Below, in pieces: positions 55,823 through 61,533 of a stretch of DNA of 64,000 nt. Location: positions 31,744,001 to 31,808,000 of the forward strand of contig NC_135764.1 of the NCBI RefSeq assembly GCF_052425735.1, in the 5' to 3' direction. Numbering within the stretch: position 1 is the first letter of the stretch; each line of letters opens with the position of its first letter. The notes beneath the pieces were generated by a model, which did no database searches, was not told where the DNA came from, and was given only the letters and a program-made list of their open reading frames with translations. The position numbers and the translations under genes were made by a program. This DNA comes from Oculina patagonica (lineage: Eukaryota).

Positions 55823-58800
55823 TCAATTTAATTCATATTTCTTTGTCTTGGAAGTGTGTTCCCGCAACAGCCAGTAGGTTTGCATTGTACCCTTTCCCTG
55901 GAAAGAGAAATAAAAAGGATATAAGAGACTTTTGCAACCACAAGGGTTTTGTGGAAAGAAGTAATTGTACGAGTTAAGCTTTTTGATGAAATGGGACGAG
56001 ACACCTGGGATCATCAGGTTAATACGTACGAGGAGGAATATTAGCGTATTATTCATACGTGTTTCAAAAGACTTCGTAAAGAGACGGTTGCGGCACATTT
56101 TTCGAGGGAGGGGTACCTTAAAACGTGAGTGGGAAAAAATGTGTTTTTATAAAAATAATTTCAGTATTCACGGTGTCCCGTCGAGCTTCATTATTTAAAG
56201 TCACTTACGTTTGGCCGAGTCATGGCTTGTATTGCTCACTATCTGGATTGCTTATTGCTTTTATGGTCCTGTAGTGAATTTGTCTTAAAGACTGTGAAGT
56301 TTTATCCCCTTTTAAGTTGTTTATAAAGGGCAATTCAGTTTGTTGAGACAACCTCGAATACGACACGTAACATATAATGTTGAGGATAAAGAAGACCAGG
56401 AATATATTAACACCACCCCTCCCCCCTATACAAATGGTAAAAGTCGCTAAGTATCTTGGGTGGGTAAAATAAAAAGTACGAGGTTCGGTTTCGTCCGCCA
56501 TATTGGATATGTAGTTTTCTCTCTTTATACGAGCGTGCAAATTGCGTTCTTCCTTCCCTCCGGCCGGCAACAATAACACGCGTGGTGCTGCAGCCGTGGT
56601 TTCGGTGCGAAAATTGCTTACTTTTTCTTCGTGAGTGTCATAAAAATTACCTTATCCATTTTGACGATTTTCCTATTTTACATTACAGTTGTAGTTTTGA
56701 ATATTTTGGTTGGGAAAACAAAGCTGGAGCTGGCATTTTTCTTAAACTGTCCAAGCTGATATGGTAGGATACTAGTTAGCAGGTTAGGGACTTGATATCG
56801 TCGATATCGACCAGCTGGTCAGCAGATAGAGCTTCTGATTGGTTGATTCTGAATTTGGGCACGGTGAACTGGTTAAGCTAACACATACCTTGACTTCGAC
56901 AAGTCCTCTAAACTCTAGAGCGTAATCACCCAGAAATGTCAGCATATCCTTTGAATCTTTGCTAACATGGATTCTCTGAGCTAAACAAAATGCAAAATTA
57001 CACAAATTTAAAATTTGGTCAATTTAAGAAAAGATTATAATGGAATACGGCAATTTTGACTGATGCCATTGTTGACATATCAAATTTAAAACAAAATAGA
57101 AATTCATCTGATTTAAAAACTGTTTTAACTGGAAAGAACATGCAAAAGTATTATGATCTATGTTTAAAGGAACAAGTTCAAAATCTACTTTATGATCAAA
57201 CAAAAAATGCTTATGAAATCAAACAACACCACTTTAAACAAAAGTCACCAAATATGACACAAGACCATACGGTACTAATACTTACGCATGCCCGTTGTTT
57301 GCATTCTCGAGGCGGTATTCACAGTGTCACCAAACAAACAGTAGCGAGGCATTTTGTTTCCCACAACTCCCGCCGCGCAGGGGCCTGGAACGAAAAAAAA
57401 AACACAATTAATGCGATTACCTCGTAATCACGCGCGATCTCGCATACTAACGACTGATAGTAAACAAGTAGCTTAACCAGTCAGATTGTCGGTTTGCATA
57501 AGTATACTAAAAGAATTCTACTCACTAAGTTAAGTTTAGTTTCAATCCTCTTCTAGTCTAACGAATTGGAAGGGTCACGTGACTGTGTAGCATGAATCGA
57601 CTAGGAGTATTACTACTCCTCCCTGGAAGGGATGGGCTGTCAGGCTTCCCTTACAGTTCACTGGTATCCATTTATATACCTGGGTGGAAAGAGGCACTGT
57701 GAGAGTTAAGTGTCTTGCCCAAGAACATGACACAAGCACCCTGACTAGGGCTCAAATCCAGACCGCTCGATCCAGAGTCCAGCAGGCTAATCAGAAGTCT
57801 ACCATGCTTTCTTCAAGGGGAAGTTCATTCCAGAATGGCACTTTTGTTATTCGCGCCAACTGAACGAATAGGTAATACCAGAAACCCATAAGGGTTGAAA
57901 CGTGTAACTCCATATGATTCGCATTGTACAAAGCGTTTGCACATTCGTTTCCATTAAGTACCATTTTTGGAAAATCAGAAGAAAAAATTAACCAATCAAA
58001 ATTGCATCATTTGAATTAAATTCACAGCGCGCGCTAGCTCGCGCTCAATGGCGTAATCTTGTTTTTGAACAAGCTTGGTTGAATAAAGTTAAATTTGGTT
58101 AAATTCTTCTGTTTCATCTTCTTGAAGTAGTCTGGAGAACTTCGCTTCGATACACTTAATGTATTTCTTTAGTTTCTGTAAGAAATTTACGGTGTTTAGG
58201 TCGAAATTCAAGCAACTTACCGTAAAACCAAAAATTATGTTGCGTGTGTCATTACGTGTATGAAGCATTCGCGTACAAATTCTTCGTGTTTCCAAATATG
58301 GTACTTAGCAAAATGAATATTCAAACGCTGTGCGCGCGCGTTACACGTTTCCACCCTTATGGGTTTCTGGTACAGTCAACTCTCTCTAAGACGGACACCT
58401 TTGGGACCGGCCGCAGCTGTCCGTCTTAGAGAGGTGTCCGCTCTGTAGAGAGTCGAGGTATCATGACACCAGTAATTCTGAGATAATAAAGCTAAACCTT
58501 TGCACAATACAACAAACCTTTGCTAACTGCAACAAGACTAAAATAATAAAAGGAGCGTATTTGCTTGTTAAAGCAAAAATTGAGAGCTGTAATACAAACT
58601 GTAATACTGTAAGTAGAAAACGACCTCTTTAGTGTCCATACACGTAAGCAGAGAAGAAATCCGTTAAAGCGTCATCAATTATGGTTAGTAAGCTTGGTAT
58701 ACACGTATCCTCTGGGCGCCGACTAACTTTACTTTAGGTCGATACGATGTTTGGAAGTATTTTCACTGGTAAAACATACATACATACATACATACATACA

Positions 58801-58940
58801 TACTTTATTTAACGTGGAAAAAAGTACACACTTAGCTGTTAGCTAGTTTACAGGTGCTCCACGATTAAAAGTTTAGTATTTACAAAAGTATTTACATCAA
58901 AACAAAGGGTATAAAAGTATTACATCAGACTATTTTAAAA

Positions 58941-58976
<36 letters not shown>

Positions 58977-61533
58977 AACAAACAAACAAACAAACAACAA
59001 CACCATCTAGCTAAATTAAGATTCCTAAAAAATATATATATATAAATATAAAAATCCTATCTAAAAGCGATAAAATATAATTATTAAACATTGAAATCAG
59101 TTTGTCTAATCTTTTTCAAAAAGTCCTTTGAGCCTGCCATGGAACGAATATCACGAGGTAGCATGTTCCAGTGCTTTGCTGCAGCATAACGCCACGACTT
59201 AAGACCATATCTGGTAGTGTTCACTTTAGGTATGGAAAGATTAAAATTACCGCGAAGATTGTACGCTGTTCTCTTTTCAGTTATAAGATTTTTGAAGCTG
59301 GATGATAAAAAACACTTCTTAAGTGTCCGTTTATGATTTCAAAGTGTCCGTTGTCCGTCTTAGAGAGGTGTCCGTCTTATAGGGAGTTTGGTTACAGTAA
59401 AATGACTGAAAAACGGCAGGGACCATCACCAGGTGTCCGTCTTATGGAGGTGTCCGTCTTATAGAGGTGTCCGTTAAGAGAGAGTTGACTGTAATACAAA
59501 GATACATTACTCACCAAAATTTCAGCTTCCAAAGAGTATGAAAACCCTATGAAATCCTTGCCTGAAGTAGTCGAAAAGTCGAGAACCAGCCGCCGCCATC
59601 TTGGAGTAACTTAGCAGCCTGGCGATGTATGTGTGACGTCAAAGATCTCAATTTTTGCTATCAGTCTTGGAGTTCAGTTTGTGCAAAATGATGCTGCACA
59701 GAACAGGCATTTCGAAAAACAAGCCAATACAAAATTAACAAGGAATGTCAAGTATTTAAACAACTTCCTGCCAAACGTCAGATTGAACTCTTTGACATCG
59801 CACGTACATCGCCAGGCTGCTTAGTTACTCCAAGATGGCGGCGGCCAGATCTCGATTTTCGGATTACTTCAGACAAGGATTTCATAAGGTTTGAATACTA
59901 TTTGGAAGCTGAAATTTTGGCGACAAACATATCTTGGAATTACCTTTTCGTTGGCGTGAAGAAAAGAAGTGCCATTTCGGAATGAACTTCCTCTTTAACT
60001 GTCAAATCAATTTGACTTACCGGTGTGAATCCCGATTCGTACACAAAGATCCCGATCACCGTCGGCGCCAAAACGAAAGCTCTCCATGAGCTCAACTAAA
60101 TGTAGCGCCATCAGTGCTATCTCGGTGACGTGACGGTGCTCATTTTTCTCTGGAAGACCTGATACCACCATGTAAGCGTCACCAATCGTCTCTACCTTAT
60201 AGACGTCATATTTGTCTATGTGGTTGTCAAAGATTCCATACAGTCGATTTAACATTTGTGTGACCTCCATGGGAGAAATGTTGGCGCATATTTGTGTGAA
60301 GTCTACAATATCGCTGAAGAAGACTGTCACGCTTTCAAACTGCTCTGCTGTCACGCTATGGCCGCCCTTCAACTGTTCTGCTACCGGGTAAGGCAGCATT
60401 TGATAGAGAAGAGAGTCCGCTCTTTGCTTTTCTTCCTTCAGCTCTTTCGTGGTTTGATGAAGTTTGGCCGCAAAGCGTTGAATCGTGTATATAACATAAA
60501 CAAAAAATGGCATTAGTAATACAATGAAACCAAAAATGCTGAGCTTAAGAATCCAGTCATTTTCGGTGGTGGTGACGTCATTCTCTAGTCTTTCAAGGAT
60601 CACATTTCCGGCTTCACGTTGTACGTCAAGTAATGCGTCTATGTAAGTAGTCATGAAGTGAAACCACTGTCTACCAGATTCCGCCGAGGCATTTTGTTTT
60701 TTGTTACTCAAAATGATGTTCCTTCTTTGTTCCACTTCAATTAATACCGACATATTGTGGGATTCCACAGCTTTTTTGTAAATTTCTTTAATTTCGGGCA
60801 TTAACTGCATGCTAGAGTTTAATTTCTCCCTTCCCAGCAAATTGTTCTCCGTGAACCAAAGTAGCTCTTTTAATTCACCGAATTGTCCTCGAATGAAAAA
60901 CGCACCACCAAGAGCGCGTTCAATCCCTGTCTTCTCTTTTCCAATAAGAAGCATTTGGTAACCAATAAATTCTGACAAAACGTCATGGTCGATCTGTTGA
61001 ACGTTGCGGAATAACCAGTCAAACAGGTTTGAAATAATCTCTGAGTAAAATATGATCTCGTCTCGGACTGTACTGTTGTCGACGCTATGTGAGATACGAT
61101 GACTATTGACAAGCGCCATAAAAGTTTCCAGGCTGTTAAAGTTATATCGATCCAATTCGGCCTCAGGCCACTTTTCGAGACTTCTGGCGTGCTTGTCCGT
61201 GTTATTTCCCGCTTCTAACACCTTTTGCCGTACATTGTGATCTCTGCCAGAACTCGCAAGCAAGACTCTTGTTCCGCGCTCAATTTGTAGCGTATGAATA
61301 AGACCAGCAACCTCGATGCTTAGTTTAACACTGTTTTGCAGTGTTTTCGATTTTAAGGCGCTTGCGCTCGCTTTTAGTGTGTCTAATATTGTAAGAACTG
61401 TTAAACCAGTCATGGCAATCAAACACAGGCCGGTCACCACAACCAATCGGAGCCGTCTGTGTCTTCGAGTGATCCTTGTAGGCACCGGTGTCAGTTGAGG
61501 GCTTGCATCAATTGGCTGTATTTTGCTCTTCAT
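55823..61533 (-). CDS. NIT-GC: NIT-domain (nitrate/nitrite-sensing family) membrane guanylyl cyclase, ~592 aa
   Basis: Exons 61533-60021, 57384-57286, 56980-56889 and 55897-55823 (1779 nt, in frame). TM1 [21 protein letters not shown]; NIT motifs [10 protein letters not shown] and [11 protein letters not shown]; TM2 [23 protein letters not shown]; helix [14 protein letters not shown]; cyclase [56 protein letters not shown] with the GTP-selective E and C. An acceptor 18 nt above the ATG means the N-terminus could extend upstream. Confidence 0.92.
57590..57810 (-). mobile_element. tRNA-derived SINE fragment
   Basis: AGCATGAATCGACTAGGAGT...CCTGGGTGGAAAGAGGCACTGTGAGAG...TCTTGCCCAAGAACA...GCTCGATCCAGAGTCCAGC; same family as 44165-44415. 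Confidence 0.7.
57878..58370. mobile_element. TA-flanked MITE (nested)
   Basis: TA|CCAGAAACCCATAAGGGTTGAAACGTGTAAC ... GTTACACGTTTCCACCCTTATGGGTTTCTGG|TA. Confidence 0.85.
58373..59491. mobile_element. Tc1/mariner-type MITE (nested; itself interrupted by a LINE fragment)
   Basis: TA|CAGTCAACTCTCTCTAAGACGGACACC ... GGTGTCCGTTAAGAGAGAGTTGACTG|TA. Confidence 0.85.
58775..59305 (-). mobile_element. 5'-truncated CR1-group LINE 3' end with (TATG)n tail
   Basis: Minus-strand translation [71 protein letters not shown], a typical ORF2 C-terminus; AATAAA followed by a (TATG)n tail. Confidence 0.8.

Follow-up and report, generated by a model that had tools for sequence, protein, structure and literature searches.

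The window analysed here is a stretch of 64,000 nucleotides from the coral Oculina patagonica, and all coordinates refer to it. A gene model built from the sequence places a gene of four exons on the minus strand, from an ATG at 61533 to a TGA stop that ends at 55823, with introns that are all of the GT-AG type. The spliced product of 592 amino acids (P0001) is identical to the NCBI entry "uncharacterized protein LOC144660849 [Oculina patagonica]". The coding sequence is laid out as follows:

55823 to 61533, minus strand: whole coding span of the NIT guanylyl cyclase (NIT-GC) gene, four exons, 1779-nt CDS, 592 amino acids; exon structure the same in L004, from another coral
60021 to 61533, minus strand: exon 1, 1513 nt, with the N-terminus, first transmembrane helix (TM1), NIT domain, second transmembrane helix (TM2), signalling helix and first 110 amino acids of the cyclase; 508-amino acid open reading frame, GT donor at 60020
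57286 to 57384, minus strand: exon 2, 99 nt, cyclase core with R518, C520, N527 and R531; AG/GT borders, in-frame join
56889 to 56980, minus strand: exon 3, 92 nt, cyclase domain, from the gene model
55823 to 55897, minus strand: exon 4, 75 nt with the TGA stop counted in, coding for the last part of the cyclase domain (K570) and a short tail, from the gene model
61552 to 61575, minus strand: polypyrimidine tract and AG acceptor in the sequence, 19 nt upstream of the ATG; possible border of a 5' UTR exon

The last assignment is suggestive only; one contig (X2 record 16) fits up to 61552 and then diverges, with 21 further letters.

Pfam profiles recover a NIT domain (PF08376) at residues 78–310 (E 6.1e-21; score 76.3 bits, cut-off 24.9) and a Guanylate_cyc domain (PF00211) at residues 395–579 (E 8e-67). 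HNOBA is matched by its coiled-coil piece only (residues 352–388, profile positions 180–216), and Pfam finds no kinase-homology, ANF-receptor or H-NOX (PF07700) domain in the 592-residue protein. The parts follow one another as a basic N-terminus, TM1, NIT, TM2, signalling helix and class III cyclase:

61447 to 61533, minus strand: N-terminus, residues 1–29, probably cytosolic by the positive-inside rule (of the first 30 residues, 8 are Lys/Arg and 1 is Asp/Glu)
61384 to 61446, minus strand: TM1, residues 30–50, Kyte-Doolittle mean above 2, within a continuous helix (23–94) of the AlphaFold2 model
60553 to 61383, minus strand: predicted extracytoplasmic segment, residues 51–327, the NIT domain (Pfam 78–310), with five N-X-S/T sequons
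60484 to 60552, minus strand: TM2, residues 328–350, from hydropathy, inside a continuous 96-residue helix (284–379) of the model
60370 to 60480, minus strand: signalling helix or dimerisation coiled coil, residues 352–388 (the HNOBA match), aligned with the pre-cyclase helix of GC-A
55865 to 60351, minus strand: class III cyclase catalytic domain, residues 395–579 (the PF00211 match), with three introns inside

Hydropathy and the AlphaFold2 model of the whole protein (pLDDT 86.7) predict that the two membrane helices flanking NIT are helical and continuous with its terminal helices, and the cyclase domain follows TM2 after only 44 residues. Since the NIT domain lies between two membrane helices, with the basic N-terminus and the cyclase both predicted to be cytosolic, it would face the outside or the lumen. 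A sequence-only reading of this DNA had proposed the same order, with a coiled coil before the cyclase, NIT on the non-cytosolic side and neither a kinase-homology nor an H-NOX domain, and had named the Pfam NIT profile as a check. That order is upheld by the HMM, fold, hydropathy and residue comparisons, the NIT profile matches at the E value given above, Pfam returns neither of the two domains, and the orientation stands as a prediction from the basic N-terminus, hydropathy and the model. The domain and residue evidence for a TM-NIT-TM-cyclase gene is far beyond what chance would produce.

How closely does the sensor domain resemble NIT domains of known structure? Modelled with AlphaFold2 (pLDDT 93), it matches the structure of NasR in Foldseek (4akk_A, E 3e-6, probability 1.00, TMq 0.74), which is its only real fold match in the PDB; the next has a TM of 0.14, and no match other than 4akk has a TM above 0.3. 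A phmmer comparison with NasR (4akk, E 3.8e-7) aligns both Glu-Arg motifs, which are listed here with a third nearby site:

61273 to 61287, minus strand: NIT motif 1, QIERG, residues 83–87; Q83, E85 and R86 invariant in 87/87 relatives
60913 to 60927, minus strand: NIT motif 2, GIERA, residues 203–207; R206 in 86/87, aligned with NasR E175/R176
61267 to 61269, minus strand: codon of R89, a position that is Arg in this clade and Thr/Ser in other NIT domains

Both Arg-containing motifs had been called intact from the sequence, and they are. E175/R176 have a role in the pocket of NasR (PMC7496416), and by alignment R86 and R206 would be the conserved Arg pair of the NIT bundle interface in the NIT-GC family. 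The conserved NIT positions R146, Y163, R271 and W290 are unchanged as well.

In class III cyclases, two Asp residues bind metal, a Glu and a Cys select guanine, and an Arg, an Asn, a second Arg and a Lys act on the transition state. D408, D452, E448, C520, R518, N527, R531 and K570 are all present in the one chain, and by residue identity the domain appears to have everything required for catalysis and GTP specificity. Its best PDB match is GC-A/NPR1 (E 1.4e-78), which aligns through the signalling helix and cyclase (residues 359–587) and agrees in the catalytic and GTP-specifying residues, as do other receptor GCs. Unlike GC-A, however, the Oculina protein has two membrane helices rather than one, TM2 joins the signalling helix directly, and the ANF-receptor ectodomain and kinase-homology domain are absent in Pfam, which rules out a canonical receptor GC of the GC-A type. 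The soluble GCs, heme NO receptors with an H-NOX domain, have a related cyclase domain and pre-cyclase coiled coil, but the Oculina protein lacks H-NOX and the PAS-like part of HNOBA, is membrane-bound and carries all catalytic residues in one chain. A soluble GC is therefore ruled out by the lack of an N-terminal H-NOX match; H-NOX genes lie elsewhere in the genome.

A tree built from NIT-GCs alone, those of placozoans and bilaterians included, places the gene in an anthozoan NIT-GC clade (support 100/99). The ortholog in the other coral (L004) has identical intron positions, and dN/dS between the two is 0.18 overall, 0.21 for NIT and 0.03 for the cyclase. A clade ortholog is borne by a spliced, intron-free contig of 2.2 kb with UTRs, from two runs of another organism. 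In Oculina itself, exon 1 is covered by low-depth contigs of uncertain kind only, none of the contig matches listed spans an intron of the gene (there are 51 further matches beyond these), and a polyA run yields almost nothing. That the locus is a pseudogene, an annotation artefact or a silent copy is nevertheless very improbable: the unclear RNA support in Oculina speaks for it, but the frame is open through four exons with canonical splice sites, the catalytic and sensor residues are all intact, the dN/dS relative to an ortholog with the same introns is low, a spliced transcript of a clade ortholog is found in two runs, and orthologs are known from Stylophora, Acropora and Montipora.

From the architecture, residues, fold and purifying selection computed here, the locus is probably a functional gene whose product is a receptor guanylyl cyclase that crosses the membrane twice and belongs to the animal NIT-GC family. 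How might such a receptor work? TM1 is predicted to continue as the first NIT helix, and the last NIT helix, TM2 and the signalling helix would run on as one helix, with the cyclase starting about 15 residues past its end. By analogy with the family, two chains would pair through their signalling helices and cyclase domains, and two complete active sites, both GTP-specific, would form. Nitrite or nitrate, as a small nitrogen oxyanion that is either environmental or formed from NO, would presumably bind between the NIT four-helix bundles at the Glu-Arg pairs, and binding may shift the terminal helices and alter cGMP synthesis in either direction.

Earlier papers already cover the family, its topology and its occurrence in corals; the gene adds one more ordinary member, with a single unusual residue in the pocket. 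TM-NIT-TM-cyclase proteins with conserved arginines, corals included, were described by Moroz et al. 2020 (PMC7400543). Platynereis NIT-GC1 yields cGMP upon addition of the NO donor SNAP and requires its NIT domain to do so (Jokura et al., 10.1101/2023.08.02.551600), in an assay in which NO was not separable from nitrite or nitrate. The sequence-only reading had placed NIT-GCs in marine invertebrates and tied those of Platynereis to NO signalling. The placozoan NIT-GCs and Platynereis NIT-GC1/2 have, like the Oculina protein, a NIT domain flanked by membrane helices, the Arg pair and a C-terminal cyclase with a GC-A-type catalytic domain, and both sequence searches and the tree group the Oculina gene with them. 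However, it is only 33–37% identical to bilaterian and placozoan members, and belongs to a stony-coral paralog clade with R89 in place of Thr/Ser. Among bacterial proteins, NasR (PDB 4AKK) and the NIT chemoreceptors share the fold of the domain and both of its Glu-Arg motifs. The chemoreceptors resemble the Oculina protein in their TM-NIT-TM topology as well, and outside the animals it is multi-NIT chemoreceptors that match the animal NIT profile best (E about 1e-80). The bacterial sensors differ in their output, which is an ANTAR RNA-binding domain or HAMP and MCP signalling rather than a cyclase, in their identity (20–29%), in the Thr/Ser at the site of R89 and, for NasR, in being cytosolic. 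The NIT domains of bacterial chemoreceptors have Kd values of 2–47 uM for nitrate and nitrite (PMC12358799), and NasR answers nitrate and nitrite, not sulfate, sulfite or carbonate (PMC7496416).

What, then, does the receptor sense? It is possible, if doubtful, that it serves paracrine or autocrine signalling by NO within the coral, being activated by NO from NOS-expressing cells, or by the nitrite into which NO soon turns, and raising cGMP as has been proposed for Platynereis NIT-GC1. The sole functional data on an animal NIT-GC, the SNAP- and NIT-dependent cGMP of Platynereis with an in vivo role downstream of NOS, point this way, and the Oculina genome has NOS gene copies clustered on contig C3. 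The bacterial affinities would also suit nitrite that is made locally, and would be a poorer fit to nitrate in oligotrophic sea water, which is sub-micromolar. On the other hand, besides its three NIT-GC genes the genome has at least nine H-NOX loci, which are conventional heme NO sensors, so that NO sensing does not require NIT-GCs, and the coral clade, with its R89, shares only about 35% identity with the NIT-GCs of bilaterians. If NO from the coral itself is the signal, the gene is uninformative about nutrients in sea water.

A role as an environmental sensor, in which NIT is exposed to sea water or the gastric cavity and couples nitrate or nitrite, and with them nitrogen enrichment, to cGMP-dependent physiology (symbiosis, cnidocyte discharge), is what the sequence-only reading had suggested, with nutrient stress as a further context. 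It draws on homology and on neighbouring genes, and seems unlikely. It is consistent with the predicted extracytoplasmic topology and the five N-glycosylation sequons, with the service of bacterial TM-NIT-TM proteins in nitrate/nitrite chemotaxis, and with bacterial chemoreceptors being the closest non-animal matches. Known NIT affinities are micromolar, however, and nitrate in the open sea is usually below them; the nearby minicollagen genes are no evidence of co-regulation, and no literature linking NIT-GCs to coral nutrient responses was found.

At position 89, Arg occurs only in the 32 closest relatives (P0001–P0031 and P0033), a stony-coral-only clade in which it is always present. Among 183 other motif instances, which range from bacterial chemoreceptors to bilaterian NIT-GCs, 172 carry Thr/Ser there and none carries Arg. 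R89 lies one turn after the invariant R86 and, by helical periodicity, should sit on the same helix face (i+3/i+4 from R86/E85). With R89 in place of Thr/Ser, the pocket may therefore not behave like the studied NIT domains. The clade could have changed its ligand, R89 being a third Arg beside the pocket that admits another anion or gives a very different affinity for nitrite or nitrate. The consistency of the substitution, its likely position on the R86/E85 face and the purifying selection on NIT favour such a change, but the remaining conserved NIT positions, from R86 to W290, are unaltered and a single substitution may merely tune affinity; on balance the change is improbable. Quite unlikely, too, is the more specific idea that the clade has re-tuned the pocket to a different anion selectivity or to a much higher affinity, for example for sub-micromolar nitrate or nitrite. 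If it were true, the re-tuned pocket could let corals read nitrate or nitrite in sea water or close around their symbionts. The R89 change lends itself to a simple mutational test.

What is new here is that the genome has three NIT-GC genes and that this one belongs to the stony-coral-only R89 clade. Dissolved nitrogen has strong effects on corals, and NO takes part in their stress and bleaching responses. To our knowledge, no animal receptors other than NIT-GCs are based on a bacterial domain that senses nitrate/nitrite, and functional tests have reached just one NIT-GC, that of an annelid. For these reasons, the three-gene set, together with a chromosome-scale coral genome, is a reasonable entry point to the question of whether cnidarians sense nitrogen oxides through cGMP.

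The protein of 592 amino acids encoded by LOC144660849 was proposed in the sequence-only reading to be a nitrate, nitrite or NO sensor built as TM-NIT-TM-coiled coil-cyclase, with the Pfam NIT profile named as a check. That profile gives a clear match at aa 78-310 (E 6.1e-21; score 76.3 bits, cut-off 24.9). Pfam finds two further matches and no others: the last 37 profile positions of HNOBA at aa 352-388, corresponding to the coiled-coil signalling helix and excluding the PAS-like part, and Guanylate_cyc at aa 395-579 (E 8e-67). ANF-receptor, kinase-homology and H-NOX domains are not among the Pfam matches of the protein. 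The absence of the first two rules out membership of the canonical receptor guanylyl cyclases, and that of H-NOX rules out the soluble guanylyl cyclases.

Hydropathy predicts membrane segments at aa 30-50 and aa 328-350, with a spacing of only 44 residues from the second segment to the cyclase. Lys/Arg outnumber Asp/Glu by 8 to 1 in the first 30 residues, and five N-X-S/T sequons fall between the two membrane segments. Since the cyclase must work in the cytosol, the predicted orientation of the NIT domain is towards the cell exterior or a lumen. In the AlphaFold2 model of the full chain (pLDDT 86.7), residues 23-94 form an unbroken helix spanning the first membrane segment and the first NIT helix, and residues 284-379 form a single helix of 96 residues that includes the last NIT helix, the second membrane segment and the signalling helix. 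The continuous helices of the model would provide the same helical coupling as in bacterial chemoreceptors and sensor kinases. The proposed domain order, lacking kinase-homology and H-NOX domains, is thus borne out by Pfam, hydropathy and the model together.

At the output end, aa 359-587 align with human GC-A (E 1.4e-78). The metal-binding D408 and D452 and the guanine-selecting E448 and C520 are all found in one Oculina chain, as are R518, N527, R531 and K570, which completes the class III requirements. Following established class III cyclase biochemistry, a homodimer would hold two complete GTP-specific sites, since every needed residue is present in the single chain.

What could the NIT domain sense? 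The Oculina segment matches the sequence of the NasR structure 4AKK (E 3.8e-7), with QIERG (motif 1, aa 83-87) aligned to NasR QCERG and GIERALG, which contains motif 2 (GIERA, aa 203-207), to NasR GQERALG; both arginine-containing motifs are intact, as first read. A model of aa 52-327 is all-helical (pLDDT 93), and its sole real match in the PDB is again 4AKK (E 3e-6, TM 0.74; the runner-up has TM 0.14). All 87 full-length relatives compared have Q83, E85 and R86, and 86 of them also have R206. The second motif of NasR carries E175/R176, proposed to line the nitrate pocket, and NasR responds to nitrate and nitrite and gives no response to sulfate, sulfite or carbonate (PMC7496416). For NIT domains of bacterial chemoreceptors, a table in PMC12358799 gives Kd values of 2-47 uM for nitrate and nitrite.

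One residue sets the stony-coral proteins apart. Of 183 motif instances outside the stony-coral clade, those of bacterial chemoreceptors included, 172 have Thr or Ser at position +3 from the invariant arginine of motif 1, and none has Arg or Lys. All 32 members of the stony-coral clade have Arg here (R89, in QIERGxR). By helical periodicity, R89 would lie on the same face of the helix as E85/R86. The substitution is not described in the literature consulted here.

The coding sequence comprises 1779 nt in four exons, and its limits are exactly the span 55823-61533 given by the sequence-only reading:

61533-60021, minus strand: exon 1, a 508-codon open frame that begins with the ATG at 61533 and is followed by a GT donor at 60020
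57384-57286, minus strand: exon 2, with AG/GT borders and an in-frame join
56980-56889, minus strand: exon 3, with AG/GT borders and an in-frame join
55897-55823, minus strand: exon 4, with an AG acceptor and an in-frame join; the TGA stop ends at 55823

The translation is identical to the database entry "uncharacterized protein LOC144660849 [Oculina patagonica]", and the 64-kb window, which is C7:31744001-31808000 of the coral genome, contains no second copy of the gene. A polypyrimidine-AG acceptor is found at 61552-61575, 19 nt 5' of the ATG, and the match of one contig breaks at 61552, precisely at this acceptor; this hints at an unannotated 5'UTR exon further upstream. The downstream neighbor is a homeobox gene, since a minus-strand ORF at 50620-50898 codes for the beginning of a homeodomain.

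A contig of another coral, L004, is 75% identical and has four exons and intron positions matching those of the Oculina gene. The exon 1 comparison with L004 gives a dN/dS of 0.18 for the whole, 0.21 for the NIT domain and 0.03 for the cyclase. A contig of 2170 nt from two sequencing runs of another organism has an uninterrupted ortholog of 591 codons and both UTRs and is a spliced transcript. A pseudogene or artefact is rejected in view of the open four-exon frame, the dN/dS values and this spliced ortholog transcript. For Oculina itself, RNA support is weak: four runs were checked over 55700-61650, and the RNA nature of those that yielded contigs was guessed. In these runs of uncertain kind, exon 1 is covered by short contigs of low depth only, and among the joints listed none crosses any of the three introns. 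A polyA run of raw reads had almost no reads over the exons.

The high depths seen in intron 1 and at 55700-55898 are attributable to repeats. Intron 1 contains two hairpin-type inverted repeats, at 59491-59943 and 57876-58372. One has arms of 162 nt, 85% complementary and 129 nt apart, and the other has arms of 33 nt, 97% complementary and 431 nt apart. Contig depths run into the thousands over 57491-59679, which places both among high-copy repeat families; they are probably MITE-like elements. A short unit around GTGTCCGTCTTA(G/T) is found in intron 1 at 58403-58450, 59337-59384 and 59419-59466 and recurs 5' of the gene at 61650-61674; it is probably part of a dispersed short element. Over the last exon and 3' flank (55700-55898), contig depth is 76-492 in three runs and the adjoining bins have none, so that a repeat probably lies just 3' of the stop codon.

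A search with exon 1 matched 2455 proteins, and among the matches listed, NIT and cyclase domains occur together in corals, sea anemones, placozoans, echinoderms, hemichordates, molluscs, annelids, nemerteans, brachiopods and a mosquito. Oculina carries three NIT loci in its genome: the present gene on C7 and two further NIT-GC genes on C14 in opposite orientations:

C14:16198094-16198801: L002
C14:16309985-16310692: L001

These two are about 110 kb apart; they share 80% identity, and each shares about 41% with LOC144660849. In L001 and L002, exon 1 stops at an earlier point of the cyclase domain than in LOC144660849, so that the two coral clades have different intron positions. Maximum-likelihood analysis places the anthozoan NIT-GCs in one clade (support 100/99). 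LOC144660849 groups with sequences from Stylophora, Acropora and Montipora in a subclade that lacks sea anemones (100/100) and whose sister comprises the sea-anemone NIT-GCs and a second stony-coral subclade.

Searching with a profile made from animal NIT domains alone gave 6469 representatives at E <=0.001, 324 of them at E <=1e-30. Tandem NIT domains, two or three per protein, occur in the bacterial methyl-accepting chemotaxis proteins P0125, P0128, P0186 and P0225; P0125 and P0128 are among the best matches to the profile (E about 1e-80). The "bacterial chemoreceptor topology" of the sequence-only reading is apt, since the four non-animal matches checked among those near E 1e-80 were such proteins. 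The donor of the animal NIT domain may have been related to these tandem-NIT chemoreceptors.

Guanylyl cyclases with NIT between two membrane helices were described in placozoans by Moroz et al. 2020 (PMC7400543), who noted the conserved arginines and the presence of NIT-GCs in many invertebrates, corals included, and proposed that they sense nitrite/nitrate. Their statement that Nematostella has no NIT domain is outdated, since P0034 (Nematostella vectensis LOC5517355) in the current annotation has NIT (E 1.5e-26) and cyclase. In Platynereis, the NO donor SNAP raised cGMP through NIT-GC1 only when the NIT domain was present, and NIT-GC1 mediates NO feedback in photoreceptor cells; NO, nitrite and nitrate were indistinguishable in that work (Jokura et al., 10.1101/2023.08.02.551600). 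A literature search found nothing on the expression or function of coral NIT-GCs, and the roles in nutrient stress, symbiosis or cnidocyte control that were first suggested have no support yet.

Three groups of NOS exon matches within 100 kb (C3:24.00-24.10 Mb) suggest about three NOS copies in Oculina. At least nine H-NOX loci are found in the genome, including tandem clusters of three and four (C4:62.30-62.42 Mb and C5:27.07-27.10 Mb). The clusters indicate local expansions of NO-signalling genes. With these NOS copies and H-NOX loci, Oculina can make NO and already owns conventional NO sensors. In the NIT-GC, by homology, an oxyanion would bind the Glu-Arg pocket of the NIT domain on the outer face, and the signal would be relayed through the continuous helix to the homodimeric, GTP-specific cyclase. 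The LOC144660849 gene is a sound addition to the NIT-GCs, a published family whose topology and occurrence in corals were already known; only the fixed R89 and the three-gene set of Oculina are added here.
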